From positions 124,001 to 188,000 of the forward strand of contig NW_026937346.1 in the NCBI RefSeq assembly GCF_032062105.1: 64,000 bases of DNA, written 5' to 3'. The notes under the pieces are model-generated. The model made no database searches. It saw nothing but the letters and a program-made list of their open reading frames with translations, and had not been told where the DNA came from. Numbering within the stretch: position 1 is the first letter of the stretch; each line of letters begins with the position of its first letter. The position numbers were made by a program, and so were the translations under genes. Source of the stretch: Saccostrea cucullata (Eukaryota). Shown in pieces: positions 3,839 through 61,579 of the stretch.

Positions 3839-6800
3839 CACACATGTAGGAATGGAAATAACCATTGCTAATTGAAAGTACGTCGTCGGTATAATATCTA
3901 AATATCGAGTTGAAGACCTCAGCAAGTGTTTTCATCTTTTCTCGTATGAATTTTTGGACAAAGGACAAGTGCACATAAGCAATGCTTAATGGGCCCTTTT
4001 TATGTGCCATTTTACTTTGGAATATATAACCAAATCGTTCTCTTTCGGAAATAGTAATATACTAGTGTATATTTCTAATTAAAAAGCACGATAATCACCC
4101 CCATAATCGACAGGGATTTGAGACAATTTACTCTTCTTAAATGCCTATATGGACACCCTAAAAATCCGGAAAAGTCGAACCGAACCTTCTTTTAGTTTCG
4201 TTTATGTAAATCAAGGCGAAGAGATCTTGAACAATCTGATGGTGGATCATAGTCGGGCGCGTTTGTGGAATGTAACTTTATTGTGCTTTATCTGTTTTAA
4301 AAAAAATGAAAGAAGTTCTGTAGTTGCCTGTAGCCATAATAATCAAACTAAGAAATCGGTACTAGTACTCTTGCATTTGAAAAAATATATACCATAAATT
4401 GAATTTGAAATCTAAAGGGAGTGTTTAGGTGGCTTTCAATACCTGTTTCATTGTCTTGCATAAATGTTAAAAATGTCTGACACTTTTATGAGTTGTGCTA
4501 AACTCTCTTTACCCTACCGTAATCTTAAATATAGATACATAGAAATATTTTTAGGCGGCACAACTTTGACAAAATGATAAAAAAAAACCTGCCGATGTTT
4601 TACAGTGAGCACCTTTGAGGAATGTTTACCTTGGTAGAACTCACGTGACTATCAGTATTTTAAATAATTTATTCCACAAGTGGGTTCAACATGGGTCATA
4701 CAGGTAAATACCTCTCACTTGCTATAGGAAAAACATTGTACTTTTTGTAAATTTTTAATTTTTTAACTACCGGCCTAATCGTGTACAAATTTCCTACTTT
4801 CACACCAGTTTTATAAATGTATTATGCGTCTTTTGTCATTCGCACAAGTTTGTACAAAGTTAGGCTCATAGTAAACAAAGGCTTTGAAATGACTGACCGT
4901 TCTCGATTTACTATAGAAAATCACAAATGTCGGTTGACCCCTGCCGCATTCTATGGTTTTGTTCTTTGTAAATACTTGAATTTCAGCGGTAAAATTTGTT
5001 GAATCTTATGGTTTAGATATCAATTAATGATTTGGGAAGAAAAATTTTGCTTAGTTTGAATGTTTATTTTTTCACATTTTACCGGGGCCCATAAGTGCAC
5101 TCGTTCTTTGCTTCATATGGATACAAAAATTGGTCAGCATATATAACGAGGCGCGAGTTGTATCCATGCGAATTCCAACAGATTATGGTGGGGCATGGTC
5201 TCCAAAAACCACATAGAGAGTGTTAATAAGAAATTCAAGAATCTTTAAATACATATATAAACTTCAGAGTACTTGTGTGTACAATCAGAACGTTTTTTAA
5301 CTAGAAAAAAATGATTTTGCAAAAGACTAATGACAAGACAAGTAAGTTTTCGAGTTCCATTAGGTTGATATTTTACTTTCATCAAAATTGTAAGTCGAAA
5401 ATGAAATTAACATCAAATAAATGATTTAACGTCATGTAAAATTACGTCATTTTGATGTTGCTGAAATTGACACCAACACCGTGCGCAACGGATTTCTTAT
5501 TTTCAAAAGAATAAAACAAAAAAAAAAAGTCAGTAGTAATTATATATCTGCTGTACAAACCCACATAACCTAAAGTTGTGCTATTTGACGGCCTACAAGT
5601 TTCTATTGGACCTTCACATAGGTCGTACAAGAATGTTCTTATTAGACTGGTATTGCATGTCTTTACCGTACGCAGGAATATCGGATATCAGACAGGCAAG
5701 CCAGTCTATGTTCTTAATTAAAATGTTATAATCCGGAAATAAAAAGGACCTCGAAATAGTTTTCCTTGTTATATTCGATAGTTAGGTTTCCTGTTTGATA
5801 AAAAAGTAAACAAACCGTGTAACGTGTTTGTGTATATTGAAGAATGCCACAGTGTAGCAGCGGCTGTATATCTGGTACATGTAGCTGTGATTTATCAGGT
5901 TTGTTTTTTGCAGATTTTCTCAAACCTTTCAAGTGATAAAGATTAATTTGCTGTTCATACTTTTCAGTCGGTGATACAGTTATTAAACCACGTGTCTGCA
6001 TGTACCTTGTACAGATGTTAAATCATCAGCTGATCATGTATAATTCAACAGCTGTTGAATGATTTATTTTGTATCATTCAAATGACCAAACACACTATGT
6101 CTCATTTTACATGTAGGGGTATAAAAACATTATTTTGTAAAGTAATTTTTATTGGTGGAGTATTAAGGTGACTTAATCATTGTTAGATGTAATAGTTGGG
6201 ACCTATATAATTGTTCCTGTTTCAATGTTAAGATCCAAAAATAGCCTTACAGTACTAGTGCATAGGCTAGGACACAACGTTAACGTAATCGAGGGTTCGC
6301 TCTGTAAAATAGGTTAGTGCTTAATGCTGAACTGCACAGACAATCTGCATGATTGTATATTCCATGACACTTGCACGTGTTTACTTTTTTGTACAATTAT
6401 GTTGGCTACAAAGCTCTTTAAGAGAGGATAATTTTTATTTACACAATACTTACACTTAAAACTATGATACATTTTAATGTAAACCTTCGGAAAATTTTTT
6501 ATGATTATTTCTGTCTTATTGATTTTCATTCATGCGTAAGCTCAGGGGATTATAGTTGTGCAAATTAAAGTATTCTTTATCTCAAGGACTGCATGGAAGA
6601 TAACATCGATTGTTGAGAAATTTAATGATACATGTAAAACATCTTGAGATCATATACTAGCCTAGATCTCTTTGAATCGTTCTATACTAGGTTTAAAACT
6701 TTTTAGCTTTACGATGTTTCTGACTGGATTTGTTTTAGCTAGCGATTTAGTCAACCCAGTCTTGCTTTTGTGATAGTAGAACACCTTTGTCAATCGAGAT

Positions 6801-7314
6801 CAAAATAATCGCCTTATATTAGATTTAAGTTAAATCGACACATATTTCCACTCTGGCGTAAACATGGTAAATGATTTCTGAATATTTATTCTAAATTAAA
6901 TACCCTGCCATTTGTTGCCTAAACAGGTGTTCTACAAATATTTTATTAATTACGACGTCGAATTAATTCACACAGATATTATCATATGAGGTGAAGTGTA
7001 AATAACGGTACATGTACGATGTAACATGCGGTCATTTAAAAGTGTGTCAATTTGGATCCAGCAATAGCTTTATGTGAATGTTTACAACACAGGTACGTTC
7101 TTTTTTTGAGAGAGATTACATGTGTATAGATGCATTATAGGGGTCATGAAATTAATGTACCCTTTTTAATCACCGCTACCAAGCATTCTAAAACCTGACA
7201 AACAATAGCGTTGGGGTTGGAGCTCCTTAACCTCTCATTCTCATTGACACGCTTATTTCGAATGTATAAAAGCTCTGTACTCATATACACACAGCCACAC
7301 AAAAAATTGTTAAA

Positions 7315-7496
7315 TGTGTATATTTTGGACACAAGGTGGGAGAGACCAACTCTAATCCACCAGTGTAGCTAGCCGGGGCAAACAGTTTGGGGTCAGGATA
7401 GGGGCCCATCACATCAAAATAACGATTTATAAATCATGTATATTTTGGACACAAAAAGGGGACGAGTCCCCTGTGGCCTCTCTAAATCCGCCAGTG
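7315..7496 (+). repeat. Two degenerate direct repeats (120-bp offset), each ending like a hAT-type MITE terminus (CTAAATCCGCCAGTG), upstream of GST
   Basis: TGTATATTTTGGACACAA occurs twice, followed by CTAATCCACCAGTG and CTAAATCCGCCAGTG. Confidence 0.55.
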
Positions 7497-12359: not shown

Positions 12360-12780
12360 TCTTCAACTTGTTTGTATGTTACTTATCTCTTTTTAAAAAC
12401 ATGATTGTCATAAAGCCTGCTTGTTAGATAACCATTAAATTCTTTCCTAGTAAATATCCAAATATGAAACATATGTGTTAGATTCTAGATCTGTGGTATC
12501 TTTTATTGCAAGCTACTTTGGATACATGTACATGTATATCGTAGCGACAAATGAATAAAAATAACTTTTGTTAATAAAATGCCGTCGATGTATCTAAATA
12601 TCAAGTTGAAGGCCATAGCAAGTGTCTTCTACTTCCCGTGTTTCTTATGAAAAAGAAAAATAGGTGTACTAATAACGGGGCCCAATCGGTACCAATTGGA
12701 ATTTCAACAGATGGTTGGAAGACTTGCGCCAAAAAAAAAACAAAAAGATATTGTCATTATTTTTATTTGAAAATAAATTA
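12360..12780 (-). mobile_element. Penelope-like RT fragment (internal)
   Basis: Minus strand VFQPSVEIPIGTDWAPLL (decayed QxxGIPMGTNCAP) and the KDTT region. Confidence 0.65.
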
Positions 12781-16041: not shown

Positions 16042-19000
16042 GTAAGATTCTCTTGCATGGAAGCCTTTTGACAACATTTCAAGTACCTGCATGTAACAGC
16101 ATTACATTTCTGTCTACTATCAAACCATCAAAATCTAAATGGTATTGGAAAATACTTTTTAGATATTCGCACCCGATTTTGCTCTTTGTTTTAAAATATA
16201 CATATAAAGATAGAATAGCTATATACAGGTACATGTATATATTATGCATATTGGAAAGAAATAAGTATACTTGGAATACTATTCATTTTTCTAATTTTAA
16301 GGCTATGTATCTAGGAAAGTGCTTAAAACTTAGTTTGTTATTGGATTGTATACCTCGTTGCGCTGTATAATAAATTTAATATACAAATCATCTTTAAATC
16401 AATAAGAAATAATCTAATCGTCTTCATACCAGATTCTGCATATCTATGATATGATTTTCACTGAAGAAATGCAGTAGCTTTCGATGATAACCTATTTGTT
16501 TAAAAAAAAATCTGAGCATTCCTTTTGTACATCAATAAAAATTGCAACTTTACTAATATTAAAAATATATTCTTTAATTTCTTTCTAACCAATATTCAAA
16601 TATCATGCAAATACGTTATATTCAGAATTTTCAATATGAAATGATATACTTATGATATGTGCGATTTAATCCAGGTTTTAATATTCAAACATATATTAAT
16701 TATGAAATTAAACCTCACAAACTAACAAGTGATTTGCAACTTCTAACTGCATGTTCATAAGATAACTGTACTGTTTACTTAAATTATAACAGAAAACGTC
16801 CCATTTGAAAATAAATAATTTTAATCATGTATGTGTCAGTTGCATCAGTCAAAGACAGTTTTAATTATATAAACAATGCACGTTTGCAAATTTGAAACAA
16901 AATAAGACTGACACTCTCGTGTCAAAAGATAATAGTTCAAACATATGTTAACAGTAAATAATAATGAGCAGCTGGATGATTTCTTAGGATTCTATGTCTA
17001 AGCCTTGCGTAAGCTGCAGACTAGGGCTTCTCTACATAACGTACCAACTAACATTCACCCTTCATTAAGGGATACAGATGATATTGAGTGAAAACTGAAG
17101 AAACGTCATTAATGAGATTTCTTGGTGTATGTTCGTTATTTTAATTAAACCAATCGGTTCACTTTTGATGAGAATGACCTCCTTTTTGATATATTTACGT
17201 CATCAATTAACCTCTTGTGTTCCCTATTGTTTAATTGAAATTTTTATTGGTACATTTAATCACAGGCTTAAGTACAAGTAAGAGCAAGGATTATCTGCAT
17301 GTAAAATATGCATAAACCATGCTTATTCATGTACCCTAGCTGGTAAGAAGATTTATTGCCAAGAAGCACGCTTTTCATTATAAGAGACATTATTCTAATG
17401 TAAGGCATTAGAAATAAAGATTTTGGAAACGGTTTGTTTTTCTTTTATATAACAATAAAATGATAATTCACAAACACAGTTCTTATCCTTACACAGAATG
17501 GCACATAATGTACAATGTAGGAGGAATTTGCTCTACACAAAACGTCTTCATTTAAAGATGTTTGTTTAATCAAAAACAACACGTGAAAAGATCTTCTTTA
17601 AGCCAAGGATTGGAGGAACATCACATAGTTTAGCAAAGAAAATGGGAAGAATGAAAGATATAAATAAGAAAATCATTTAAATGCGTGAAGATTTTTTGGT
17701 TATTACTATGTATGATTATAGTTAATTACCGTAGGATTAACAAACAGAAAAGTCTTCAAAATTAACGAGAATGATGTAAAGCAAACAAATATAGAAATAC
17801 ACATGGTTGAAAAAAAAACAACTATTGTTCAAATTGTTGCGTTTCACAAAAGAGACACAATTTTAACAGTGAAACCATAAAGTGTGTGTCATATGTAGAA
17901 TTGAAAATATATTTTGTATAATAGTATTCCTTTCGCAAACATTTTCTATGAACGTCTTATATACAAAATGAAAGCTAATCATGTTCATTTAGAGAAAAAA
18001 AACAAACTACATGGCATCAACAACCTAGAGTTCATTTTTACGTAAGATAAACAATGTGAATAAAAACGAGAGTATCTTTCCTGACAGTTACGACTGACAT
18101 GACGCTATATCTGCCCCGTCTGTGACTATTACGTCATAATTGATAATGTCGATATGCCCTATGCATATGTATTAAAGAAGATAGTGTAGAGCACATGCAT
18201 TATGCAAGATAAAAAGAGGGCAAGTTTTGAGCGATATACCATCTGTCATTTTTACATTGCCAGGATTCTGTCAAATCTATTCCAAATCAATATCAACATT
18301 GATCGAGCCTAAAACACAAAATACTACAATCCCTTCTGTCTGATTTTCTTTTGATTAACGATTCATTGGTTCTGTAGCAAAGTGAAAAGAAATCATAAAT
18401 TGTATGTTTATACGCCTACATAGCGTTTGTAATATCAGTTTGTTCTTATCTACTTATCACATTTAACATCTTTCAACCTTTGGTTTTGTTGCTTTTGCTA
18501 CAAACTAGAGGCATAAAAGATTATTTTTCTTGTAAATTTTTGTATTTGTATCAATCATATTCTGGCAAGCAATCAATTTGTAGAAATATATCTCGGTTAC
18601 TATGTGTAAAATGTGTAGGTAATACATTGAAATTATCATTCCGAGGTGTCTTTCCAATCAATAAAATTCGGGGCAAATTTACATGAAGATAAAAGTAACG
18701 ATTCAATCGCACCAGTCTGATATATTTTTATAGCCGATTTTAAAATGAATGGAATATCCTGTCATTCCTACAGGAGAAGTAAAAGTTTAAAAAAGATAAA
18801 TCTTGATTTTTGATTAGACAAAAGGAACATTTATAAATACACTGTACATTTGTCGATTTGCCAATGTAAAGAATATGTAGATACTTGACTTAATTATAAT
18901 CAAATGAGGTGTTAAATATTAGATACCTTCTCTACCATCGGACACATTTAGTTCATAACACTGCAGTTCTTTGATAACACATGCTAGGTTTTGTTTGTAA

Positions 19001-26500: not shown

Positions 26501-29500
26501 CTACATCATGCAACAGATTCAAACCCTCGACTTAAGGATTAACTCCTTGTCCTTACTCAAGAGAGAAACCTGACAGTGTGTTTTTGTGTAAATATTTTGT
26601 AAAACTATTTAGGAATGCTGTTTATCACAAACGTTTTCGTAAATAATCAGTTTGCATTGTAACAAAATTGTCTAACCATCTGAATTAATGTTTTTAATCC
26701 AGCTGTAGAAGTGAATGAAAGAATTAAATTGTATGACGCAAGAAAGGAAATGGTGCAAAACAACAGCACAAGAAAGTGTTCCTCTACATCGTGCTTATCA
26801 ACACCTGAAATCAAACTGAGAATTTCTCAGCTAAATTCAGCTTAAAAACTGACAAGGAGAACTCTTAAAACTAAAATGCGCTGACAATGCATTTGAAACA
26901 AAATACCAATCGTAAACAATGACACCTTTCACTTTCTCTTTCTTTTATAAATTTAAGTTTTTATCACCGATTTTATTGATTATTTTTCCAAATAAAATCT
27001 ACGGCATCACTTTGAGTTCAGATCACCTATTGTCCTAGTAAAAGCTTTGAAATATCTTCAAGTTGTCTGGAAGATGTCATCAATCTGAAATATGTGTCAG
27101 ATAAATCTGATAATTATGGGCTCCAGTTTCTTATCAAAAGCATTAATTTGATTTACACTGAATTTGTTGACGTCTTTATCATCTTGTTCATTTCTCCTCT
27201 TTTGAGTAGTTTAGTAGAATTTAGAAGATTTATGAAATTGGATTAGAATGGAATTTGTCTTTGATTAAGATTAAGATTAAGAAGAAAATTCCTGCTGAAG
27301 ATTAACTTTCTGTATAAAATATATCCATGTGCAATTAAAAATACATTCAAAGTACATGACTTCAAAGGAAAACATTTTCAAATTGTTTAATAATTGCGTA
27401 ATATTTTTCCACATATTTGTCAACCACAAAGTTGTCATATATTTTTATTGTGCTTAGGAATACACAATTCAGCACATTTTACTGTAGTATCAGATGTTGT
27501 CGATACATCTTAACACATAATTTATTAATATCCTAAAGCAACACCGTTGGGAGGAGAAGTACTCTAAGTGTGATTGCACCCCTTTTTGTATTGTAAAAAA
27601 CATCAACGTTTTATTGTCGGTTTATAATAATGTTACCAGATTTTGTTTAAATATATTGTTTAAAAATGCCTTCATATCAGAACATGTCACTTTTTTCGTG
27701 AAAAAGAAGGCGACATTCTTTACCACACAAGCTTTTACAGAAAAAATTGAGACGGTTACAAAGAAGCTTTCATTCGAAGAATTACTTGAATAAACATAAA
27801 AGTGTGCTGATGTCTTGGATTTTTTTCAGATGATAAATGCGTATGTGAAAAACAAAAGAAACAAAAAACTCCATTGTGTCATTTGTTCTAAATATGTGTT
27901 GGCTGTTAAGTGGGTAAAAGAACCGTCTCTTAGGATTAATCAATGAACCATGGTATGTTATCATTATTCTGATCCCCATATCTACCAATGGGATTTTTTT
28001 TTCGAAACTTCTCTCACAATTCCAGCAATTGGTTCGCCATCTTTAGGAATATATATGGTGATGTCCCCTATATATATAGTTTGTGATGTGTTTGTAAAAC
28101 AATGTGTTTGTATATGTGTTTGCAAAAAAAAATGTTGCTAGAATTCCTCTAACATTATCATACGTCATTAGTACATATATATCATATTACATTTTGTTTT
28201 TTTGCTTTTGTGATTTCCGTTGAGTTAACTTTTTACCCGTATGTGATTTATATACACCCAGCCTTCATTTCAGCTCTGTAAAAATGAACCTCTTATCACG
28301 ATCTCTGATACTTCGTCATACATCGAAAAAAAATAAGTGCATCGTATGCCTTTAATAATCAAAGATAATTACCACCAAATTATACGGAATGCAGGTGTGT
28401 CAAATGTACATGTAGCAAAATATAAGAATAGCACTTTTCTCTGATATAATTATGTAGTTTATTGTTTCACATGTTTACCTATAAAGATTTGGTAAAAATA
28501 ATAATGAACCAATAAAAAAAACTACAAATTATACTTATTGGCACCTAAAAACCTAACAATATACGAAAATAAAGAATGTGTACAGTTTACAATATAATCT
28601 TAAGCGTTTTGTCAGATTTCATTTTTTGGCACTTAGCATTTCTTTAAGCAAGTGAAAGTACTTAAAGGTATATTTCGTTATCACAATTAGATTAACCATG
28701 CACTTAATCTCAAAAGCCTAGTAACACAATAAGTTCTTGTATTTGGAACATCTTTGTAATTTATAATTATACGCCTGTCAATAAACAATGAGGCATTGTA
28801 AATCGTTTTAGATTAAACTTTTCATTTGCGATGCGAAGCTGATTTTGATGTCAGAAATGCAACAATTTCATGAAACAAGGTCGAAAGCGTTGTTTAATAC
28901 TTGTCAATGGTTGACAAGAATAAGACGCATCATTTAATGTATCTAAATAATTCCGTCGACAGACTGTTTATTATATGATACTTTACAGCTGACTGGATGT
29001 TTATTACACTAATAAACCTACATGATCGTAAGGAAGTTAAACCCCCTAAATCTTGATCATTGGTTATATCACCTGATGACCTCGATATTCCTGATGCTCT
29101 TGATTTCTTAAAAACAACACAAAGAAATATCTTATTCTTGTTACAAAATCTCCACCTGATTTTCTAAGTTGGTTCAGAATCAGGTGGAAATTTCGGAAAA
29201 GCATTTTTCAAATATGTTACATATGTCATAACTTACACCCACAACTGGCACATTCGCAATATTTTATTATTTGGATTCCTGTGTTAGGGTGATTGTTTCT
29301 TTGGCTTCTCAGCAATGGCTAATGTTCAAAGCTTGAGAAATTCTTCTATTATATCTGCGATTACTTGAGACTTAACAATCAATTTGCTCTAATCTAATCA
29401 ATGAATGATAGTTAATCATTATATATACTAAGTATGCCATTTTCTAAATAATTTATCAATATAACTCACCTTGTAGATTTTTCATATCGCTATAGTTGAT

Positions 29501-34095: not shown

Positions 34096-34310
34096 TACTG
34101 TAGACGTAATTTTATTCCATGAGGTCATAATTCCACGGAAATACTAATTCTGTTTAATCCGTGGGTGGAAAATTATCATATTTCCTAGATTCTCACTAAA
34201 TGCCTTACATGTATATAAATTAAGTACATTGGAACAAATTTCCCAGGAAAATTTGTGAACACTTACATAGTGTAAATTAATACCACACGGAAAAAAGTAC
34301 TTCTACAGTA
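34096..34310. mobile_element. TA-flanked MITE (TA-CTGTAGA...TCTACAG-TA)
   Basis: TACTGTAGACGTAATTTTATTCC...GGAAAAAAGTACTTCTACAGTA. Confidence 0.75.
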
Positions 34311-39505: not shown

Positions 39506-40986
39506 ATCCAGTAATTAGCCCGACAAATAACTTATTTGTCTCAACGATTTCTATATATAAACCGTCTAATTCGTCCGAACGAATTTCTAATTTGTCCGAA
39601 CATTTTTTTTTACCTAGCCCTACAACATGAATTAGTATATGAAATAAAATTCTGGTCCCAGAAGCGTTCCTCCCTGAAAGATGCATGTAAGCTCTAGCAT
39701 TTTACGGGAGATACATTTTGTATAGCTATTAAATTAGATTCATTTGGATTTTTGAAATATTTTCTTGCTTTTTTGTTTTTCGATGTGCTGTATTTCCGCT
39801 GAATTTAATATGCATTTGATTTTGCATTTTATCGAGGCAGGTTATCAAAATTCTACAGATTTAGACGCCTTCCTATAAATTCCAATGTCTTCGTGATCTT
39901 CGCCTACAAAACTACTGCTTGTCTGTTGCGTGATAGCAATTTGTCGATTTTAATTTGATCAAAGATGAAAATGGTTATCCAGTTGATTAAATCAGCAATC
40001 TTTAAATTAAAGAGGTTCTCTGTTTTCGGTTTGAACAAATTTCTTTTCACAACTTAATCAGCAAACAGAAGAGTTGCAAAAAGAAGTAAAATGTGTATTC
40101 TCTAATGTGAAATGAGTCTGTTGTTGTTACACCATACTATTATCAAGTATTTCTATAACTTGCTTTATTAAATTGCTTTGAATTTTTTAGTATAATCAAC
40201 GGCAGTTAACTTGGCCGTGAACAGCAAAAGCATCAATTTATACATAATTTTGTAAATGCTAAAGTGCAAAACAGATATATTTGATCTCAAACCAAATTTT
40301 ATGTACCGGTTTACCCGTGAAGCAGCATTAGTGCCATTTTCTTGTACCTATGAAGGGTCAGAGACGACATGCACTCGGACAATGGTCAACCATTACTGAG
40401 TGGGCAGGTACTTCTATGTGTATGTTTTGTTTTCATTTGTGTATTTGCAGATACATTTAAAAAGAGTACCTGGGAAAGTTTTATTTTGGGGTCAATGAGT
40501 AATTAAACCTACTCAAAGAAAAATACATTAAAAGATCTAGGTCTAAAGCAGGATAATAAAATGTTCATGTAAGAGGATTGCACGATCGCGAGTAGTAGTA
40601 AATCGTAGTACATGTTTATAAGTCAACAGGTTCTAATACATCTTTTTAATCGTCGCGTAAGCTCTAATCCCCTTTCCAGATTACACTCAAAGGAATACTT
40701 CATAAATTTTAAGATAACAGATAATTTTCTATGAACGCATCAATTTCTGCTTAATACATGTAATTCACTGGATCACGATTTCACGCTGGTATCGACGCAC
40801 GGATGCCCTGTCATTTCCTATTAATGCGACGATGGGCATGCTTAAGCAAACACTTCGCTAAGAGCTGTTCGATAGTGTTAACCTCTGTAAGAATAAGGTG
40901 GTGCTAAATTTGTTTACAATACACTTACGCCGTTTACCCTACCGTGTAGTTTTTATTTACTAAGTCCTTCCATTTATGTCCACGGC

Positions 40987-40994
40987 TATATAAA
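40987..40994 (+). promoter_or_regulatory. Putative TATA box of RERG-like 2
   Basis: GGC-TATATAAA about 270 nt upstream of the ATG, in a locally CpG-richer stretch. Confidence 0.45.
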
Positions 40995-41358: not shown

Positions 41359-44300
41359 GTAAGTAATTTTCTTTTTAAATATTTAATTGTTGTTTGCTAA
41401 TATTTTTTAAGATGTTGCTTTTGTTTCTCTTCTTTTTTTCTCTCCATTTTTTGGGGTGGCAGGGGTTTAATGTATAGTTCAATTTTTCACAGGGTTTCAG
41501 ATATTTTGATTTTATTTCATAAATTTAAGATTACATTCAGACTTTTGCAAAATAAATACTGAAATAAGGCTTTTTTTTCATTTTAATTCATTCGCTCAAA
41601 GATCTTTCGTAAATGCATTGTGAATATTTGCAATAGAAAAATAACATTTCAATAGTGTGGCCAACGCTTTAAAATTTTCTCTGTCATTTTGAAAATACAA
41701 TATCAAAACCACCGAGTTCCAGTTCCAGTAAGACTATTTATCGTTTCAATTGGTTTTCAAAATGTTGATAATTAGTTTAGTTTTGGCTTAATAATCAACA
41801 GGGTTGTTGAACAATAGCTTCAAAGAACATTTCTGTAAATAGATAAACATCATAGATGTTTGTTAAAGTCAATACGTTTGTTAGCAATATAATGGTATCA
41901 CAAAATAGTTTTTCCTGATAATAAAATCTTAAGAAAAATCTATCAACATGATCAATTGGACCATTTGATAATATTTTTGTGTAGTATAAGAAAAAAATTG
42001 ACATCAACCATGTAAAAATACGTGACCAGTAAAATACAGTGAGAGTCTATTATCGTAAACGGTATTAATTCCATGACGTTACAAAATACGTTCTGTTTTG
42101 TTTTCATCAACAAAAACAATATTGAATAGCCGGTTTCTCATTTCGATCAAAGATAGTTTTGATTAAGTTAAAGCCAACATTCGCATTATTTTAGCATGTT
42201 AATCTCTTTTCTCGTCCTACACGGAAATTTGAAATTCCAGCAGAAATGAATTTCAGGAAATTATGTTTATTCAAGTATATATAGATCGAGGAGGAAACAG
42301 AGAAATAGATGTTTAAAATAAGATTCTTGTGCCATCTTGGCAATTTCTTATCAAGACCTGCACTGCAATATGAATTGATTATAAACCTAATTTTTGAAAG
42401 AACAGAAATCCTAGGAAAGGGTGTATCGTTTTGCAATAACCTTTTTCTGTTTGAAAATTCCTCACACAAATGCAATTCAGTTTTCAATTATCCGGTACCC
42501 TCTCCCTTTCATAACCTTTGCGAAACGAATGTTCAAATGGGATAATGAATAAAAAAGTAGCAGAATTTAAGAATAATGAAATGGTGTACAAGTTGACATA
42601 AATGGTTATTACATTGTAATACATGTATCTGTAAGTCCGGTTCTGCCAGACATATTTTTATGACCAAATTCTGCAACGAATATGAAAGGCAGAGTACATC
42701 TTGTCATGATGAAATTTCCACTAGAAGGAGAGACTGTTGTGGCTAAGTAGAGTAACATTTTTTTCAATGAAACTGATGACCTTGAAAGTGCACTACCGAT
42801 GATTTCACAATGCCACTAAGTTATACTAGTATTCGCCGTGTGCCAACCAATGTTGGAAAAGAGGAACTATTTATTTTAGACAGTACATGTATATCAATTT
42901 GGAAATCAAATGGCCCGGTTAACCTAAAACAGAATTTTAAATAACATTATTACGATCTTTCACTCCTAAAAGTGCCCTAGAAAAACATATCATAACCAGC
43001 CTCTCCCTAATATTATTATCTTATATAACTGATTTCCTCATATGTTCGATTATAGAATTAAACTGTTTATATTAAAGGTACTAACCATTTAAATGGCGGA
43101 AATGAAAGATCAATAAAACAATTAACTGTTACTCATTTATTTATTTGAGAGAGAAAAATAACGCTTTCTGATTAAGCAATAGGATTTAAGTAAATGGGGC
43201 CCAAATGTAGCATTATGTAAATCTTTGTGTACATTCGATGTTAATCTCGATCAAGTAGCGAGACGTGTAGTCACAGATGGGCCTCCGATAAGGAATGATC
43301 AAGCTAATCCCCCATTAAGCGTGCCAGAGTTCTTGAGTACTAGTTTTTTTCCCTCCATTTCAAAATTTGTAAGTTTTACTCCGATACTAGATTCCACTTA
43401 TTGTGCAATTTAATAAGTTGTAGTTGATATGTTGTATATTTTTCGAGTTCTGAATTTTTTGTCAAAGCGTGAAAAAAATCAAAGAATTTTGGTGAAACTT
43501 TCCTTCGAGAATACTAGTATTCCATTGGTCAGAAGTTCATTTGTTTAAGTATCTACATGTACATGTATAATAAATTCATTCCGTTAGGCCATCAATTTAC
43601 AGATTTCTTTCTGTGATGAGTAAGAATTCTTTTATTAAATATTGCATAATATGCTCCTTCTTTGAAAGATAAATCCTAACAAAAACTTCTGACCAGTTAG
43701 TGCAAAACTAAATGAGCAATGACAACCGACAATTGCAAGTAGTGCATTCAATTCATGGGAGCTTAAAATTTTGTTAGCAGATCTAAACTGTATTGTTAAA
43801 TTTCTTTAATGTGTGAAAAGCTGAACCATTTAAGCTTTTCAAAAATGTTTTATTGAAAACGTCGTCAGAGAGTTTAATGCCGAAAGAGCATTGTTGAACT
43901 ACTTTCGTGAGATGGGAATTTCTACGCAAAGAAAAAAAAAACATACATGAAAATCAAATGTTTGCATGTGTATTATATTTATTAAACTGAATTTCTGAAA
44001 GTATAGAATTGGGCTAGATCACTAAGGTTTTTTTCAATTAGTTTAATGTCTTTAATATGTAAATATTTGATGATAATCGGAAAATTGTTTCTGATTTGTA
44101 CATGGAGAGAAAAAATGTTCAGCAATATTCAGGCCACACGCAAGTTGGAGGCATCAAAAGCAGTTTTCAACAATGGCAAAATGTAGCAAAGTATATTTTC
44201 TGTACACAGTTCTTTTGCTTTTCGAACGCTTTTCCTTTCATTGGTAAATGCCTATGATGTTTGATAAACTCTCTCGTAAATTTTTAAAGAATAAATAAAT

Positions 44301-46160
44301 TACATTATATTGTTATAAGCGAGATGGCTGCATTTTGATGAGATTTTCTCAGAGAGGGAAACTTACCGAAAGATAGTGCTTCTCGTTACCCCTGCATCAG
44401 CTTATTTTTATCTTCTATTCTAGAGAGCTCCTTTATCGAATTAAGATTAGACGTACTCTTATTTGTACCTTTACATAATTCGTATGATTAGATTAATGAA
44501 GACTTGATAACAAAAGTTTTTATAAATAGATTTTTGGATATCAATGCATCTGAAAAAAAATAAAGTCACATGCATGAATGATAAATTGCTTGCTATTCTT
44601 TAAACCAATACTTGTATTTAAAGAGACCATTGAACTTTTCAGTTCATAAAGGCCCGAAAGTTTAAGAAATATTATGCAGTTAGATAAAACTAATCAATTT
44701 GCTTTTCCCACAATAAAAGTCAACCTGCCAAAATGTATCTTTGCATGAAGGAATAGGTCAATTTTTGCACCACATAAGATTTTAAAATGGATGAAATCAT
44801 ACACATCGCTGCAGAGAACGTATGCAACATGCATCCTCAAATCCGCTGATAACGTTAACAGCTTGTGGATATAAAAAAAATATAGAAATGTGCTAATAAT
44901 CTTTTGAATTGATGCTTGATCTATCTTTATCTTTTTCTTGCAGCTTTGACTGTGCGTTTCATCACACGACGGTTCATTGGGGACTACGATCCAGATTTAG
45001 GTATGATCCAAGGTCAAGGACTCTTTATTAAATATAAATCATGCAGATATACACATGATACATGTAAAGCATTATATTTATTATTTATTCAATTTTTAAA
45101 AATTGAATTCGTACCAATTCAACGTGTCTGAAATTACATAAATACAAACTCCTTCATCTTTTAATTTAATTAATGCAATTTGTTCTTTCTTTTTGTTTGG
45201 TGCATTTCGGGGTCATTTTTCTTAATTTTGTAAAACCAATGACCCAAAATGTGTCTTCGAGCCATATGTAAGGGTAAAGAACCGTCTATTAAAAATGTAA
45301 ATATTTTCTAACTAAAAAATTTCTGGTCTCTTCATTTTAGTTTATTCATAAATGCGAATGCATTCTTGGACACTAATTCACATATCGCCTTCCTGTCTCG
45401 AGTTTTACGTTTGAAAGCAAATCAGGTGGTAAAAACGGAAAAATAGTAAATGCGTACACTTGTGTCTTAATCCGCTTAATCTAAAAATGTAAACACGCAC
45501 TAGACATTGATTCAAAAATATAAAGTTCATGCTCTGAGCATTTGTAAAAGTTTGAAGACAAGATAATCTTATTTTACGGTGTACTGCTTTTTTTCTTTGT
45601 AGAAAAAGTTTACGCTTGCTCAAGATGTTTAGATGGTGACACAGTGACCTTAGAATTATTGGATACGGCCGCGCAGGTAAATAGTTCTTTTTTCAGCATA
45701 TGCTGATTTTTTCTTCTTCTGCTTGACCTAGCTTATTTCCTGGGTCTGTTTATGAAAAGATTCAATATTCAAGACATTTTTCCCAATTAAATGTTTAATC
45801 TGAGAGAGTGCAAATTTCTTTAACGGTAAACGATTTCGATAATCAATCCAATTAACAATTAATTTAATCCATTTACAAAGATTAATCCGTTTGATATTGA
45901 ATCTTAAACCTACTTTCTCTATCTTGTGTGGTCTTAATTACTATATTATTTTACTCGTATATTAAGTCCAATTAATGATTAAAATAATGGTTCCGACCCA
46001 TTTGTTTGATGACAACATTGCTGATATAAGCAAAATTGAAAAACCATGCAACAACTTGAAGGCTAAATTTCTCAATTAGTTCACTGTATCTCGTGTCATT
46101 GAAAAATAATTAGTGAAAAAGCTTACTGGGTTTTTATACCCCACGCAACTAGTTGCGGGA

Positions 46161-46202
<42 letters not shown>

Positions 46203-48205: not shown

Positions 48206-49304
48206 TCAGGTTCATTCTGGACCATTTATCAGTAAAAGTTGAAAAGAAGTTTTCATCACCTCAAGCTTCTGATGAGCTTCGTTATAAAATAAAGCTTATC
48301 TGTGATACTTGTTTACAAATGAGGACTGATAAGAGATAAATTACGCATGTACGTTCATGAACGATGCGAGAAAGGCGGATATTCAATATTTCTTGTTTTT
48401 GTTTTAACTTCCATTTTATAGATCATGTTTTACGTAATAAAAAATGATAACACAAATTCATTTTTGAGTGGTGGATTGAAAGCTATTATATACTATAACA
48501 AACTATGAGGAATCGTAAATTTCCCCTAGTTTTAAGGAACTAACACATCAAATAAGGCCATATAAACCGAGGTCCTTGTTGTTCGAAAGTTGGCATTACC
48601 TGTTCAACATCCGTATAAGATCAAGAATGAGTTAGTCTAAATTCCAGGGACCCAGAGTCTTGCAAGTATCTAAAGTGTCAGCTTTTCACTGCCAATATAT
48701 GGCGTCCCATTATACGTAAAACAATTTTGAAAGGACGTAAAGGAAAGCAAGCAAACAAACAAACTGTAGAGGTATGAAAGCTATAGCCAGGAATACGGTA
48801 CCACACACTTAGTGCTGGAGAAAGCACGTCAAGTTTATCAACAATTACTAGTTGTGTTGGCCTTTGACGTATTGTTACTGAGCTCACACCCCAGAATAAT
48901 TCACCAAACAATAGGAGAAGGAATCCGACAGAACAATGTAGCATAATATGCTTACATGTAAACATGGCTGTTCTTAATATAACTAGCAACAAAAGGTCCA
49001 GCGCGCAGAATAGAATCTGGCAAAGTGTAATTCATTAATTTTTGCTGGTATTTCAACATGTTGAATTTTTATATTTTTAAGATGGTGATATTTTTTTTCA
49101 AAGGTAGTCAGGAAATTATCCCTCTTCTTTATGACTTTTTATCAATTGTTTCCCATAGTCACATTTTGTCCTTGGTGACAATAGATACACCAGAGTAGGA
49201 ACTCCAGCAAAACACTATATCAGCTGTTATACCTACAACACTGGATGTCCTTAAAATGTACATGATATGTCTGTTAAAATATCAATTTGAATTTCAGAAA
49301 TCTT

Positions 49305-49835: not shown

Positions 49836-51409
49836 AAGACATAAAAATTCAAATTGAGGAGCATGCCGTTTTATAAACAGAAACTCAGACAGATGTTTTA
49901 TGGACAATGAACGAATTCTTTTATGTTGCATACACATTATGCCTGATGTCGCTAAAGTCTTTGAAGGCTAATGGCATCAAAATTTATTTATAAAAATAAT
50001 TATTTCACAAACTTGCATTAAGTCTATTATTGCGCTTGATAAAAACATATCTTATGGAGAAAATGTGTACCCTTGTTTTTAGACAATTCAACATTTTTTT
50101 TTTTTCGTAACGCTTTTTTTAACTTGAGGGATGATAAAACAGAGGTACATGTAGATGTATTTTTTCACTAATGACATATACTGTACTATAAACATAATGC
50201 AGCTTTTGTACATGTATAGATGCATGGTGCAGTCTTTATAGAGAAATCAAAAGGTCAATATCAATTGGATTTTTATATAAAGTTCACTACTCTTTACAAA
50301 AGCAATAAGCATAAATCTGGAGAGCAAAAAAAAAAATTGTTCGAATTACACAGTTCAAATTTAAGTTCCGGAGATGCCTGAATGGAATTAAATATTTGAT
50401 GATTTAAACTTAGAGACCTTCAAATCAAATCCTGTTCATGTGATTCCATAAATTCTGTACTCTTTATTTCAAAATGATAAATTTCTATAAATTTTCTAGA
50501 TATTTAATCAAAATATATTCTGTGATGATGCATGTTACAACTCTGATATACATTGTACTTGTCTGATAAGCTTCCTTGCAGAATTCTTTAGAAAAGACTG
50601 TTTTGACTTATTTTGTATACAAACTGTGTTCCATACATTTTTTGATTCTTGTCTATAAATTCCAAAACTACTGAGGTATAAATGTCCATCAGGTGTTTAC
50701 AAATAAAATGAAAGTAAACACATTCACATTTAGGAATTTCACATACATGTATATTGTGAATACAAACAGCGTTCCATACATTTTGTTTACATGATTGGTA
50801 ATTGCAACCATGTGTAGATGATATTTGGCCGGTGTGGAAGTCAAAACTTCACTTCTTTAAAAATCAAATGTATAAATTTTTTGATTTAGATTTGACTGCA
50901 TATCAAACTACAGGTAAAAACAACAACTTTTAATGCTAATTGGCTATTGTTTACAGGCTGTCTGTCATAGAAAGCTCATATAGAAAAAGTACGGTGTGCA
51001 AATAGGTAATTCTAAATTCATATTGATCCCTAATTTTAATCTTTCGATTTCCCAACTTTCCCCTGAGTGAATTTTTCTAAACTTTTTATATGTGAGTTAC
51101 TAATAGCTTATCTACAAATCTGCATTAAAATATGAACTGTTGCAATTAGTTCTCGTTTTTCAGTAGAATGACTAGAACTCAGGAAAGTTTGTTAATTGCA
51201 TATTATATTAGTATGCTTAATTAAGAAGCATTCGAACCAATGTCAGATTGATTCAGTACAAGTTCGCTTAACCCATTAAAATATTCTTTGTAACGTTTCC
51301 CTTCTTCTTCGAATGATTTGTAAAGAACCATTTAAATATTTACAATGAAAACATTAATAGGCATATTTTTAATTTGAAAATATCATTAATTGCAAAGATG
51401 GAAAGGGTA

Positions 51410-51700: not shown

Positions 51701-52900
51701 CATTGGACAATCAGCGTGTATAAATACAGGCAGATTTGCAGAAAAAAATGTTTCAAGATGTTTAGTATTTCCTATTGAATTGTTTTGTTTCCTACAGATA
51801 CAACTTCCAATGCCGGAATTTATTATAGCAGTCTAGTTTCTGATCTATATATAAAGTGACACGATGGGTTATGATGCCAGACAGAACTGGTTTTTATGAC
51901 GACATATGTACGTCTGCTATTCGGTGTGCTTGCGTTCGTCTGCGAACAGTAATGAGGATCGGAAATTAAATTCGAAAGCGAAAAGATACACACAAAAAAC
52001 ACAAATATTAATCCGCTTTGGTATTTTTCTGTGATTGTCCAGCACTTTTGGCAAAATTCCTCTTTTTTTACGTTGGTTGAAGGAAAGATTGGTAGTATGA
52101 CGTCTAACATTTAATTAGCATTGAAGAATGCTGAAGAACCCAACTCAGTCTCGACGTGAGAATCTAATTTTAAATTACAGTTGTATATGATACTATGTCG
52201 GTCAAACGCCGCCCGGGGAAAAAGTTTGACCAAAGAAGAATGTAAGTTGTACAATGTAACGAATATATTTTAATCCTTCATGATTTTAATAAAATATCAT
52301 GAGATACATGTACATTTCATATTCAATACAAACGTACACCTTTTTCTATAATTATATTTCCAATATGCATGATTGTAAATTAAACATTAATTTACTTTTC
52401 GGGCTGCACCTGCACATAATAAATAGAAAATCAATAAAGATTAATACATAATTATGATTGCGGTTTTTCCGCTTGCACCTGTGAGTAATTTATATAATGT
52501 TTAGAGAGCGACGACCTAGCCAGTCAATATATTTAGTGACTTTTCATTTGTTGTCAATTGTCACTTGGTGTGGGAGGAATAGCACTTTTATACATAATTT
52601 TTAGGATCGTTGGGTATAACGGAATGCACAAAAACTATTTCATGTAAAAGTCAAAGCGCATATACTTTGTAGAGTAAAATAAACGAATATTAACATATAT
52701 TAGAATGTCAAAATAAAATTCATTGTTGAATCTATCAGATTCAGTTATAAACATAAGTCTTCAAAGCAAAGAAATACACTTTCGACCATCAAGAATAAAT
52801 CCATCTCATTCTTACATATTGTTTTTTTTCAATTGTAAATTCTGTTGCTGAGAAAAATTATGTGATGTTGTATAAAAGCATTTACGAATTTTTTGTATGG

Positions 52901-54230: not shown

Positions 54231-55005
54231 TCAAATTTATTTTTATTCACAAATCTGTCGGACTCAAACAAATCTCAGTGGATATTTTCACTTTATTTAC
54301 TATCCATAAGATGTAATGTATGCTCATACCAGTACAGTTTACTAGAAACTAACCCACGATCTTCAAAGTCCTAGGAACAGGGCAAGGAGGCAGGGGTTAA
54401 TTGCCTCGAGCTCCCTGTCATAACCTTTAGAACGTGCGCCACTCATTGCATGTTTGACAACAGCTTAAATTGTTTGTATACATATAACTAACGTTTTTAT
54501 CGAGATACCGTCATTTTATTGTTCAATAAATAAATGATCAATAAACATTAATGCATAATTGTAATTGCGTTTTTTCTGCTTGCACCTGTGAATTATATGT
54601 ATAAGATTTACTTAGAGGGCGACGACCATTAGTCAGTCAATATGTCTAGATATTTTTCATTTGTTGTCAGTTGTCGCTTGGTGTTGGAGGAAGAGCACTT
54701 TTATATATAATTTTAAGGTTTGTTGGGTATACCGGAATGCACAAATACCATAATTTTTATGTAAAAGTCAAAGCACGCGTTTTTTTGTAGAGTAAAATAT
54801 ATGAATATTAACATTTTAAATAGTTCCAAAATTAAAATTCTTGTTAAATCTATCAGATTCAATCTTGATTCAAAGTCTTCAAAGCAAAGAAATGATTGTT
54901 TGACCATCAAGAATGAATCAACCTCATTCTTATATAACAAATGTAATTTACGTTGCTGAGAAAAATTAAGTTATGTTGTACATGTATAAAAGCATTGACG
55001 GATCT

Positions 55006-55155
55006 NNNNNNNNNNNNNNNNNNNNNNNNNNNNNNNNNNNNNNNNNNNNNNNNNNNNNNNNNNNNNNNNNNNNNNNNNNNNNNNNNNNNNNNNNNNNNNN
55101 NNNNNNNNNNNNNNNNNNNNNNNNNNNNNNNNNNNNNNNNNNNNNNNNNNNNNNN
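55006..55155. other. Assembly gap (150 N)
   Basis: Run of N. Confidence 1.
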
Positions 55156-56030: not shown

Positions 56031-57559
56031 AGCACCCGAGTAGCAAATAAAAAGTGCCATAATTTCAGCATAAAATGTTACTGCTCAAAAGTGCAAAAGT
56101 ATATGATGAAAACTACATGTATCCGATTTTGTTGTCACTCATTTCCGATCATCTATTTTTGAGCAGCAATTCTTGTTAACAGACTTCCTCGGGTAAACTT
56201 TTGGGCTGATAGAATTAAACATAATGCTAATTAAGCAATTATTTAGCCGGTGTTTATAATTTTGCAACACATCGATAACTAAACAAGGAAGACTACTTGA
56301 TTATCTTTTGGCACTTGATAATTTGAAAGTATTCAATTTGTCACATTGCCAAAAAATTTCATAGCGTAACATTGAAAAAAATGAATGAATATATTGTACA
56401 CGAAAGAATAGCTTTATCCTACACAGTACATCTTTGTGATGAATTGCTATTCATGTTGTTGACCTTTATTTAATTTTTTCCCATGACAATGCAAATTTAC
56501 AATGTATATTTAGTATTCAGGTCAACTGGTCAATGGACAGAGACGGTTAAGAAATTGTTTTAAATGTCTGTTTCCCGTCTTTCTATGTATCTTTCTGTCT
56601 GTATACTTTTTATTTAGAATAAACAGTTTAAGTAAAATAACACTTCAATTTCCTTGGTTATTTTTCTCTTCTTTTGTAATAAATACTGACCAGTAGATCG
56701 AGAGCTATACACTTTTATCAAAGACTTTTGATTAAACATGCAAACAAAGGTCTCTGACTTTTAAAACGATAAAAGGAAATATATATATGTATGTATATAA
56801 AATAAATAAGGAGATAAATATTTTGACTCAAGGATTTTAAAGTAAGCGTTACAAAAGCCTTGTTTTATTCTTTAAAATTCATTGGGAAAATAATCGCGGG
56901 AAAACGATTTATCCTTGAGTTAACTGCATTTTCAGATTTATTTATAATTTTTGCGCTCACTTGTTTATTTATTGACTTCAAACAGAGTATAACTATTCTA
57001 ATATAAACCACTCTTCCAAAAAAGCAATTTTCATTTTAAGAAATTAAAATTTCAATCATCCCAAGACATTTTTAATTCTCTGAATGGTAAAAAGAGTGAA
57101 TTGTATTGTCACATGCCTGAAAACGTTAAAATTTCTGTGTCTTTTCAAATATCTTGTCTATGACGAAACTACATGCGTAACAAGTAATTAGCACAGTCTG
57201 AATAAAAACAGAGCAAATTCCCAGACAACAGTCTAAGCAATGTTTATAACAAAAGTATAGTAAACTGTGAAAGCATGCAGGCTTATACCCGTATCAATTT
57301 TCCGAATAATTCGTGTGTTATTCAGTGTAGGTGTTCGTCATATTATTGTTTACTATCTATTATATACATGTATTTCAAATTATCGCCTTTAATTCTTTGT
57401 GTCGCACGACAATTATAATTATGAATCACCTACAATCTAATGATAAAAGTACATTGTACAATAAAATGACATTCATTTTTGGTAACATTCACTGAAAACA
57501 TCTTTTACAAAATCAGAAAATGACATTTATTTTATCTAGTAAAATATTATACACATGCG

Positions 57560-58880: not shown

Positions 58881-59009
58881 TTAGCTATCCGTGATTTCAC
58901 AAATTTACAATTAAAACATCCTTCCTTATGAGAGAATGGCAATAAAATTGCATTTATTTATATAATTTAAACTGTCTTAACGTTAAAGTACAGTTATTCA
59001 CATATATGC

Positions 59010-59560
59010 ATGGAATATGTATATGAAGATAAGCTCAAAAGACCATTTACCCATACAAAATAGGAGCAGAGAAAACAAAGATCCCCAAAACATCAGAAGT
59101 GGGATCAGATGGAGGAGTGAGCATATTCTGCATGGTCACATCCGCCGTGTGTTCCTTGTAATGACTTGGGAAATATCGGGAAAATCTGTCGACTATTCAG
59201 TGTGTAAATTATGACATAACAATATGTATGAAAAACGTCCGTCAGTATAGGAAAAATTGTATTCGATGACAAGGTCTTTGTATCGACCGTAGAACTTACG
59301 AAATTATTACTTCAAAGGAGATGCCGAGATCCTTTTTCAGCAGCTGGGTTGTCTGTAACTTATCTTTTTTTAAAAATTGTACATACGTAGATCATGCTCT
59401 TGCGTATCAAATCAGTTGAAAGGTATAAGCCCCGTATGCAAGTGATGGAAGTATATTGCTGCATAAGTGAGGGAAGTTTACAATTGAAACGTTAAAGTAA
59501 TCTCGTATGTCTTACAACTTGGCTGTCCATAAACGTTCTTTTCAAATGTAACATCTTAAG
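59010..59560 (-). mobile_element. Penelope-like RT C-terminus plus 3' tail
   Basis: Collinear with the 13760-14330 copy. Confidence 0.8.
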
Positions 59561-61579
59561 CACCCTCTCTACACAAGTGCAAAGTACTTTTTGGACATGG
59601 AGAAAAATATATTGTATAACTATAAAGGAGTTAATATTGAGCCTATTTATTTAATTTTCACCATGTGGTGCGTGGCATTTACCCCCGGGAAAAATGTTCA
59701 AAGACAACACTGTATAAGTGAATAGAAATCACTGTTAATTACTTCAATGGAAAAAATACATGTAAAAAACACGTTCATATTATCGCCTTTTAAAATGTTT
59801 GAATACTTTAATTCATTACAAATTGAGTAATATATTGTAAATTTTTATTTTTTGGTTAATTGACAATACCAGAAAAAGTCTTAGAATCAGAACTCTTTAT
59901 GCAGTGTGTGGGAGGTTGATCTTTGATTTACATGGCATATAGTTGATATAAAGTGGAAATGACCATTGTTAATTTAATGCTGTTGATGTATATAAAGTTG
60001 TAAAAAAAAATTTTGTAAAAATTTGAGGCTACAAATTTTCCAAAAAATTCTTGGAATTTTTAAGTATCCACATCTAGTTAACATCACTTCTAGATAACAT
60101 TTTTGCACAGTTTTACTGAAGTTTCTCCTTCACTAAGGTTAATATTTTAACATAGTGAGGAACGTATAATAAAGAAAAAGAGACCGTTGTTTTGTTGAGC
60201 TGAAAATTTTATTGTTGAATACATGTAATGTTTCTTTGGTTAGAAAAATAACATTACAGGAAAAAATGAAAATCTTACAAGTATAAAAGATAGGAAACTT
60301 TTTCATTCAATTTTTTTTTATTGAAGACTTTACAAAACAATTGTCATATTCAGAGGAACAACTTCATCTACTATTCGTTATAATGCCGTTTGAAGAATTG
60401 CTGACTTATTAATTATCATTGAATAAACCATCAACTAGACATGTCGAAATGATTTGAACAATGTCTAGAAAAAATAAATCAAATGTGTTGTGAATTACAG
60501 GGAGTGGCTGTAAGTGTTTACTTGTATTCTAAGACATGTACATTAGTACGCTTTACTGTAATAAACATCATCCAATTCTTCGTCTGTTTATATTGCGTCT
60601 CATACATCCCCACATTGAATGAAACGAAAGAAATTACATAGAATTTCCAGCAAAATGTTGCATTGAAATTTGTTATAAAAAAAAAATAAATTCTACTTTT
60701 ATTGTTTATGTACATATTTACGTAGAAAATATTTTTTTCACATCTTATGAAGTAAAATATTACTGTTTATCACTCAAAAATTGTAAATTAAACAAAAATT
60801 GGCATTTTGCAACATAATTTTTTTTAAATGGACGATGCATTCAATTTAGGAATTAATTAGTTCTTTTTTCGATTAAAATCATATGTTTTTTTATCATTTG
60901 ACCTTTTATTTATTTTTCATAGATTTCAGGTGGAAAAATTATTTACGGTATATTCGTCATTTTCTCGAAGAAAAACGCTTTTCTTGATGCTATGTAGACA
61001 ACCCCGTTCATCAAAACATCTAAAATTCAAATTTTCACTCAAAGAATTTGTTCCTACATTAACTTGTGTGTGATGTGCATGTATGTTATAAGTAAGATAC
61101 AAACCATTATTAAATTGAAAATCTTGCGGAAAGAAAATGGATCTGACAAAATGATTAAGAAATAATACAATGCAGACATTCAGGTCTTCTTTTTAAGTGA
61201 AATCAATGCTACTTTACTTAACTTTATTTAATTAAATATTTCAAAAATTCATTATATGTGTTCGTTTCATAACGACGCCTTACTCACTAATTAATTCTAA
61301 ATCAAAATTTGCGGGGAAAAAATATTTATAGCAAAAATATGGCCGTATTCTGCAGAAAAAAATATGAGCATCCAATACGCTTAGTAGTATTTGAAAATAC
61401 ACAGTAAAGACATATTAATCAAAATGGACGGAGTCAGATAATATACATACATGTATAGATTTATATGTATGAATATAATTTTTAAAATCAATCTGGGAAG
61501 AAAGTTTTGATAAAAAAAATATGGAATAGGATAAAGTTGACTGATTTGTACAATCAAACATTAGAACACACCATGTCTG

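Follow-up and report, generated by a model that had tools for sequence, protein, structure and literature searches.

Copies of the palindrome TACATGTA throughout the genome of Saccostrea cucullata as probable excision scars of TA-targeting transposons

The DNA analysed here (the window) is a stretch of 64,000 nucleotides from the oyster Saccostrea cucullata (contig NW_026937346.1, positions 124,001 to 188,000; C19483:124001-188000 in the 1.17-Gb assembly of 23,869 contigs that was searched). Scattered over it are copies of an exact palindrome, TACATGTA, in which the letters CATG stand between two TA dinucleotides, and most of which are probably scars left in the germline by the excision of TA-targeting cut-and-paste transposons of the IS630/Tc1/mariner type. 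An earlier, sequence-only reading of the window had listed 30 positions of this word; a pattern search matched all of them exactly and returned zero extra copies in the window. Two pairs of copies overlap as TACATGTACATGTA (12523/12529 and 43554/43560), leaving 28 loci. They are listed below together with one paralogous site without the word; a strand is assigned to none of them.

5876..5883, TACATGTA copy, exact match
6108..6115, TACATGTA copy, exact match
6629..6636, TACATGTA copy, exact match
7009..7016, TACATGTA copy, exact match
12523..12536, double copy TACATGTACATGTA, exact match; either a further gain at a TA of the first putative scar or hexamer slippage
14555..14562, TACATGTA copy, exact match
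16230..16237, TACATGTA copy, exact match
28407..28414, TACATGTA copy, exact match
32516..32523, TACATGTA copy, exact match
34206..34213, TACATGTA copy, exact match
35713..35720, TACATGTA copy, exact match
35875..35882, TACATGTA copy, exact match
40755..40762, TACATGTA copy, exact match; old and shared with contigs of relatives from public runs
42620..42627, TACATGTA copy, exact match
42884..42891, TACATGTA copy, exact match
43554..43567, double copy TACATGTACATGTA, exact match
45059..45066, TACATGTA copy, exact match
48953..48960, TACATGTA copy, exact match
50146..50153, TACATGTA copy, exact match
50209..50216, TACATGTA copy, exact match
50744..50751, TACATGTA copy, exact match
52305..52312, TACATGTA copy, exact match
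52871..52872, 'empty' paralogous TA, located in the other duplication arm, from paralogue alignment
54979..54986, TACATGTA copy, the 'filled' site in the younger-looking arm of the duplication, six letters more than at 52871
56114..56121, TACATGTA copy, exact match
57365..57372, TACATGTA copy, exact match
59757..59764, TACATGTA copy, exact match, also in a 79%-alike paralogue (L018:2266)
60220..60227, TACATGTA copy, exact match
61448..61455, TACATGTA copy, exact match

The word is far more abundant than the composition of the window predicts. Dinucleotide-preserving shuffles (n = 100) gave a mean of 2.06 copies and a maximum of 7, and Markov expectations derived from the window were 1.9 (order 1), 3.9 (order 3) and 5.7 (order 4). 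The sequence-only reading had estimated an approximately 10-fold excess over two to three expected copies, and this held with 30 copies observed against two to six by shuffles or Markov orders 1-4. At order 5 the expectation rose to 14.8 (P = 3e-4 for at least 30 copies) and at order 6 to 25.6. The latter value approaches the observed count because the 7-mers on which it is built derive mostly from the motif itself; being circular, it does not refute the excess. Once simple repeats were set aside, TACATGTA headed the list of 8-mers in the window. Local hopping would predict clustered scars; the spacing of the copies in the window was near random when short gaps were counted by hand and compared with an exponential expectation. 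The assembly gap at 55006-55155 is touched by no copy (the closest ends at 54986, 19 letters ahead of it), and since the finding is a count of dispersed 8-mers, the gap has no bearing on it.

Genome-wide, 362,932 occurrences were counted, i.e. one per 3.2 kb, versus 125,227 for the same letters in reversed order, and the exact word lies on approximately 0.34% of all TA dinucleotides. A comparison sample of 191 kb, drawn from 20 further locations across the genome, contained 70 copies (0.37 per kb, with 0.47 per kb in the window), and this comparable density indicates that the excess is not peculiar to the window. When sample and window were pooled (255 kb), the 100 copies exceeded expectations of 7.0 (order 1), 12.5 (order 3), 21 (order 4) and 41.5 (order 5), and TACATGTA was the top 8-mer outside microsatellites and repeat families. 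The claimed excess thus withstands Markov models of orders 1-5, in the window and in the pooled sample alike.

The sequence-only reading had also stated that the flanks of the copies share no homology, and this is essentially right. Only five of the 100 sites had a paralogue in the 255-kb sample, these paralogues mostly lacked the motif, and a 2.8-kb query spanning five motif sites matched nothing but itself. The five cases were compared after global realignment, and three of them showed a clean difference of CATGTA: the window copy at 54979 versus the site at 52871, L020:7083 versus L012:~3744, and L017:3378 versus its tandem neighbour at L017:~3572. In all three pairs the short copy carries one TA and the long copy TA-CATG-TA, while the flanks are otherwise aligned. 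The empty site AAT-TA-TTAAC contains no part of the motif beyond TA. In the fourth case the letters are absent from seven paralogues, and the gain is thus derived; the alignment is messier here. In the fifth case the motif occurs in both copies. As for the copy at 59757, it is either older than the spread of its repeat or was gained twice. The window pair belongs to a local direct duplication (52418-52872 and 54525-54980, 82% alike and about 2.1 kb apart) whose second arm reaches the gap at 55006. The comparison used only letters to the left of this gap, and the letters to its right found no match in the local paralogue. With three exact pairs and none differing by substitution, the predicted presence or absence of six clean letters at a TA was borne out. 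An all-against-all alignment of the sample, after realignment, contained 11 strict six-letter indels, two of them of the CATGTA type, although the sample is too small for this count to be informative alone.

A further comparison was made between 6,000 letters of the window and contigs of public sequencing runs deposited under other organism labels. Over 40700-46100, the best of these runs (X1, X2 and X5) differ from the window by approximately 3-5% in letters and by many small indels; they represent close relatives or very divergent haplotypes, other than the assembled individual. At site 40755, the one motif copy that could be judged in this way, an X5 contig aligns across 40702-41101 with zero gaps, and pieces from X1 and X2 imply zero net length change over 40702-40840. 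As there is no length difference in two other organism labels, this copy is old and shared. Among the 12 of 143 indels listed, the one six-letter difference, at 41669 (TTAAAA), is unrelated to the motif. The same comparison revealed a 9-letter tandem duplication at 41162-41179 (TATTAGATG twice) that the reference carries but contigs of three other runs lack. The interval 46100-46699 is a very high-copy repeat, in which the summed depth of public-run contigs rises from approximately 8 into the tens of thousands and alternative joints are numerous.

Taken with the flanks, these data bear on the possibility that the copies belong to a dispersed repeat family, or that they are a sequencing or assembly artefact. 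Nothing but their abundance speaks for it. A repeat family is contradicted by the 95 of 100 sites which have no paralogue in the sample and by the unrelated flanks, and an artefact by the independent run under another organism label that carries site 40755 gap-free. We regard this explanation as next to impossible.

The excess is also highly specific. In the 255-kb sample the exact palindrome reached 14 times its expectation, and each of its 24 one-letter neighbours only 0.5-2.8 times. The sequence-only reading had mentioned many one-mismatch variants in addition to the exact copies; such variants are somewhat enriched, but at most to this weak degree. Summed up, the excess of the neighbour words about equals that of the exact copies, a ratio that would fit a long-running source followed by neutral decay, the scars being on average roughly 0.1 substitutions per site old. 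Among the 16 palindromes of the form TA-xy-x'y'-TA, the sole standout was CATG (8 times expectation at order 3; CTAG reached 3.5 times). The words TACAGTA/TACTGTA were mildly enriched, with 76 observed versus 35-54 expected.

A compositional or mutational bias might be thought to produce such a word through an excess of pyrimidine-purine alternation, through CpG decay in TACGTGTA/TACACGTA, or through correction of near-palindromes. Indeed, TACATGTA alternates pyrimidines and purines throughout, alternating 8-mers as a pool occur at twice their expectation, and within the range of 1-5 times spanned by alternating words and palindromes that match TACATGTA in composition, ATGTACAT reaches 4.5 times. 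However, a twofold excess of alternating 8-mers cannot account for a 14-fold one, the neighbours and same-composition alternating words standing at 1-3 times. Moreover, the paralogue differences are six-letter gaps and never substitutions, and the putative CpG precursors are not tellingly depleted (4 and 2 observed versus about 2 expected). A bias of this kind is thus very improbable as the origin of the word.

Overlapping doubles number 7,180 genome-wide, or 2% of the copies, which is approximately three times the expectation for re-use of TA sites taken uniformly; the TA of the scar itself lies in the favoured sequence context described below. The 255-kb sample contains two doubles and no triples. 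These doubles, including the two in the window, would also be expected if the copies were seeds or remnants of a hexanucleotide microsatellite, (TACATG)n, growing by slippage. Yet 98% of the copies are single units and not head-to-tail arrays, and a single unit cannot originate by slippage at a bare TA; apart from TA, the unit is wholly missing from empty sites like the one mentioned above, and the sample has no triple. Slippage may contribute to the doubles, but we give it very little credence as the source of the word.

The spectrum of insertions was further determined at fixed positions. Four TA sites in very abundant satellite-like families were picked by abundance alone, and the letters found between two anchors were tallied genome-wide. 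At site 1 (AAAAG-TA-GGTCANNNTGACC), 20,106 copies were empty versus 44 with one to eight extra letters. The six-letter class comprised CATGTA eight times, accompanied by three different variable triplets, as well as CATTTA, CTAGTA, CCGGTA and a single tandem duplication; the insertions of seven letters included CCCGGTA/CCGGGTA (three times) and CCAGGTA, those of five letters CCGTA (twice), and CGTA and TA were also present. A non-TA junction of the same family, GG^TCA, located two bases downstream, served as control: its 14 events were all homopolymer growth or local duplication, and none was a palindromic insertion. Fourteen insertion events were recorded at site 2 (C-TA-A context) and 24 at site 3 (CAAAGTTT-TA-CATAGGAATA), the latter including CATGTA and TATGTA (twice each), CGGTA and CTGTA. 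Site 4 (AAGTTTTACA-TA-GGAATATA), within a 166-bp tandem satellite, had 13,230 empty copies and 80 insertions, among them CATGTA 12 times on 12 different contigs, CACGTA, CAATGTA, TA 13 times and many xTA triplets, which may be subfamily variants.

With the four sites pooled, CATGTA made up 22 of the 35 six-letter insertions (26 if one-letter variants are counted), while a random six-letter string would be hit once in 4,096. Its companions were CTAGTA, CCGGTA, CC(C/G)GGTA, CCAGGTA, C(C/G)GTA, CTGTA, CAATGTA, CGTA and TA. All insertions of at least four letters at the probed sites, other than duplications, consist of a second TA and a short inverted core; the palindromic core has both shorter and longer variants, it is bounded by two TAs, and the empty state is ancestral. 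Given the thousands of empty copies, the gain of CATGTA is derived. This combination, with inverted cores between two TAs at TA sites and none at the non-TA control, is what excision of TA-duplicating elements predicts. The frequency of CATGTA per TA was 0.09% with A at position -1 and 0.04% with G, and 0.015-0.03% with T, where about 13,000 empty copies were assumed rather than counted. This order matches the flanks of the 100 sampled sites: compared with TA in general, position -1 shows a preference for purines and a shortage of T, position -3 an excess of A, and the bias is mirrored on the opposite side. Published target preferences of Tc1 and Sleeping Beauty point the same way.

As for the families themselves, the first consists of satellite-like tandem units of approximately 110-145 bp with a palindromic core, AAAAGTAGGTCA-nnn-TGACCTACTTTT, which has 20,106 matches genome-wide. 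Such units are located at L005:700-2100 and 7900-9200 and at L009:3400-6600. They may correspond to the satellite-like repeats carried by Helentrons that were described for the Pacific oyster in a study cited by PMC10294476. The 166-bp tandem satellite contains AAGTTTTACATAGGAATATA, a 20-mer with 13,230 exact matches; examples lie at G000:C116:11357-12703 and C132:42599-43780.

The satellite data are also relevant to a functional explanation, according to which selection would have maintained or multiplied TACATGTA as a functional palindrome, such as the target of a dimeric DNA-binding protein. The word is an exact 8-letter palindrome, and it is known as a promoter motif in oomycetes, which are unrelated organisms (PMC11134190). 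On the other hand, some 363,000 copies are distributed evenly over the non-coding DNA, gains occur inside satellite monomers and decaying repeats, the neighbour words are as abundant as neutral decay predicts, and selection gives no reason why copies should be born as six-letter insertions at TA. Selection on a binding site is therefore a far-fetched account of the abundance of the word, although a subset of copies may have been co-opted later, in line with the suggestion of the sequence-only reading that the scars could seed a regulatory motif.

The outcome that recurs at unrelated TA sites is a conversion of TA into TA-CATG-TA, with a gain of six letters. Its most plausible source is the departure of Tc1/mariner elements, whose transposase cuts one strand two to three letters inside each end, and the flanks keep the terminal letters as 3' overhangs. 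As described for these elements, TA is duplicated on entry, the cut in the non-transferred strand on exit falls a few letters within the element, and the 3' overhangs are then end-joined, so that the first or last two to four letters of the element remain between two TAs (PMC6943129, PMC7827188). Two routes to CATG can be proposed. The source element might end in CA...TG and be cut with a two-letter stagger, both overhangs being kept. Alternatively, it might end in CAT...ATG and be cut with a three-letter stagger, in which case two 5'-CAT-3' overhangs would pair via AT and yield CATG without loss; such perfect pairing would account for the main scar being so uniform. Similarly, CCGTA/CGGTA, CCGGTA and CC(C/G)GGTA could all come from one end type, CCG...CGG, with three-letter overhangs overlapping by three, two or one letters. 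As the element would move on with each jump and the scar would stay, scars could come to outnumber resident elements.

The proposal of the sequence-only reading, that a TA-targeting transposase left these scars, is thus supported by the six-letter gains, by the companions with inverted cores at TA, by the clean non-TA control and by abundant Tc1-type transposases. In a six-frame search of the genome, PF13358 (DDE_3, the Tc1-type catalytic domain) gave 1,183 first-look candidates, and all 150 that were scored exceed the Pfam cut-off. Many loci contain stop-free open frames of 340-370 residues, and several groups share equal scores. A transposase of the Tc1/mariner superfamily is thus predicted from sequence to be present and plausibly active. 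This agrees with the many DNA transposons and MITEs (miniature inverted-repeat transposable elements) reported for bivalves, among which Tc/Mariner is one of the richest groups (PMC10294476).

Several known systems offer parallels. Sleeping Beauty leaves the canonical footprint TAC(A/T)GTA and the minor forms TACATA, TATGTA, TACTA, TAGTA, TACGTA and TATA (PMC6943129; bioRxiv 10.1101/659086). As in the oyster, a duplicated TA surrounds a few terminal letters of the element, derived from end-joined 3' overhangs, and the minor forms TACGTA, TACTA, TAGTA and TATA were all seen at oyster TA sites. In contrast, the dominant oyster core has four letters (CATG, a gain of six) and that of Sleeping Beauty three, and the oyster scars accumulated genome-wide in the germline, whereas the Sleeping Beauty footprint comes from an assay. 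For Tc1/Tc3 of Caenorhabditis elegans, TACATA/TATGTA accounts for about three quarters of somatic events (PMC12632400), and these four-letter scars are the commonest ones published for Tc1/Tc3 (PMC12632400, bioRxiv 10.1101/659086). The TA target, the CA...TG ends (which in the oyster we infer) and the letters of the scar are alike. The precedent invoked by the sequence-only reading is qualified by this, since six-letter dominance departs from the usual four-letter scars: one overhang is usually lost in the nematode, and both are apparently kept in the oyster. Finally, excision footprints of Stowaway MITEs in Triticeae have been traced on a phylogeny (PMC1925063). These are likewise natural, heritable excisions of TA-targeting non-autonomous elements, inferred from homologous sites, but at single loci, unlike the genome-wide excess of hundreds of thousands of copies in the oyster.

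Inverted repeats in the sample were inspected as well. The one good candidate flanked by TA, a 551-bp MITE-like element at 3288-3838 of the window, has 98-nt terminal inverted repeats (98% complementary), TA on both sides, and encloses a second inverted repeat (3396-3487 / 3622-3713). It was rejected as the source, as its ends read GTCCG...CGGAC (GT...AC) and not CA...TG. Other inverted-repeat candidates starting with CA proved to lie in the interior of longer inverted duplications. Extended but imperfect inverted repeats (75-87%) at 34885-35166 and 37901-38180 enclose about 3.3 kb with two TACATGTA copies; this structure may be an old DNA transposon. At L018:5440-5460, the sequence TACAGTACTGTA combines TACAGTA and TACTGTA, both scars of the Sleeping Beauty type, with a common middle TA, and a paralogue lacks five of the letters.

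A number of observations weigh against the excision reading. No element of the form TA|CA...TG|TA was found in the 255 kb by scans for TA-flanked inverted repeats, repeat finding and inspection of ends, nor any remnant of a Tc1 transposase by Pfam analysis of the ten longest open reading frames and motif search of the six-frame translations; the link of the scars to a particular element family is one that we infer. The repair outcome in the oyster departs from the nematode model, and the four-letter forms TACATA (0.99 times expectation at order 3) and TATGTA (1.16 times) are not clearly enriched. TACA-N-TGTA is enriched approximately 3-6 times for all four middle letters and does not single out CAG ends. 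There was zero CATGTA among the 14 events at site 2, whose empty copies were uncounted. Of the 143 indels separating the window from its relatives, none of the 12 listed fell on a motif site. Finally, where the same insertion is seen several times at one position of a satellite, a fragmented assembly may have duplicated haplotypes, or a single event may have been copied. As for the missing source element, its absence from 255 kb is unsurprising, because DDE_3 occurs at approximately one match per megabase.

The same absence, together with the unusual uniformity of the scar, would agree with a TA-specific process of break and repair in which CATGTA is added with no mobile element involved, such as cutting by a domesticated transposase or other nuclease followed by a fixed repair product. 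The varied companion cores (CTAG, CCGG, CCNGG and CNG) instead point to several element families and not to one fixed product, and we know of no repair pathway that adds a constant CATG without a template nearby. This explanation is unlikely; it is nevertheless the only alternative to which we assign more than a slight probability.

A bolder version of the excision reading, doubtful but less so than break and repair without an element, would take the scars as a countable record of germline cut-and-paste events, of the order of 10^5-10^6 in number. The scars would stem from a 'ghost' family with self-pairing CAT...ATG ends and few or no resident copies, and the approximately 363,000 palindromes would have provided the host with material to be used at some sites, for example in dimer binding or structurally; alternatively, an excising enzyme kept by the host would drive the process.

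Although the mechanism is textbook, we found no description of its occurrence on this scale (approximately 360,000 copies) in the literature searched. That search returned no paper in which a genome-wide excess is tied to TACATGTA or another scar word, no genome-wide count of natural Tc1/mariner scars, and no report of an animal genome whose most over-represented 8-mer outside repeats is a single scar word. Cut-and-paste transposition normally leaves just the elements that stayed to be counted, whereas a uniform scar would make past excisions directly countable. It would also allow rates per TA to be compared (0.34% genome-wide versus 0.04-0.09% in two satellite families) and would read out the repair of breaks in the germ line, here with both overhangs kept. 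Word counts combined with alignments would thus make the lifetime activity of DNA transposons, in terms of excision frequency and copy-number growth, accessible to testing. Approximately 2.2 Mb of the genome would correspond to a single six-letter insertion sequence, a mutational signature outside the annotation of repeat libraries, and this signature will skew the discovery of motifs and the modelling of indels in bivalves.

Some minor observations concern other parts of the analysed DNA. In the window, an exon-like frame of the Ras family lies at 47615-48202. Open frames of the LRR+TIR (Toll-like receptor), IL-17 and C1q types were seen at L016:1432-3285, 5392-6018 and 9101-9583, upstream on the contig of the window; genes of these kinds are consistent with a bivalve. 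In the 255-kb sample, runs of at least eight C or G were far in excess (CCCCCCCC and its complement, 202 versus 0.7 expected at order 1), and words of the CCCCCGGG type were likewise over-represented.

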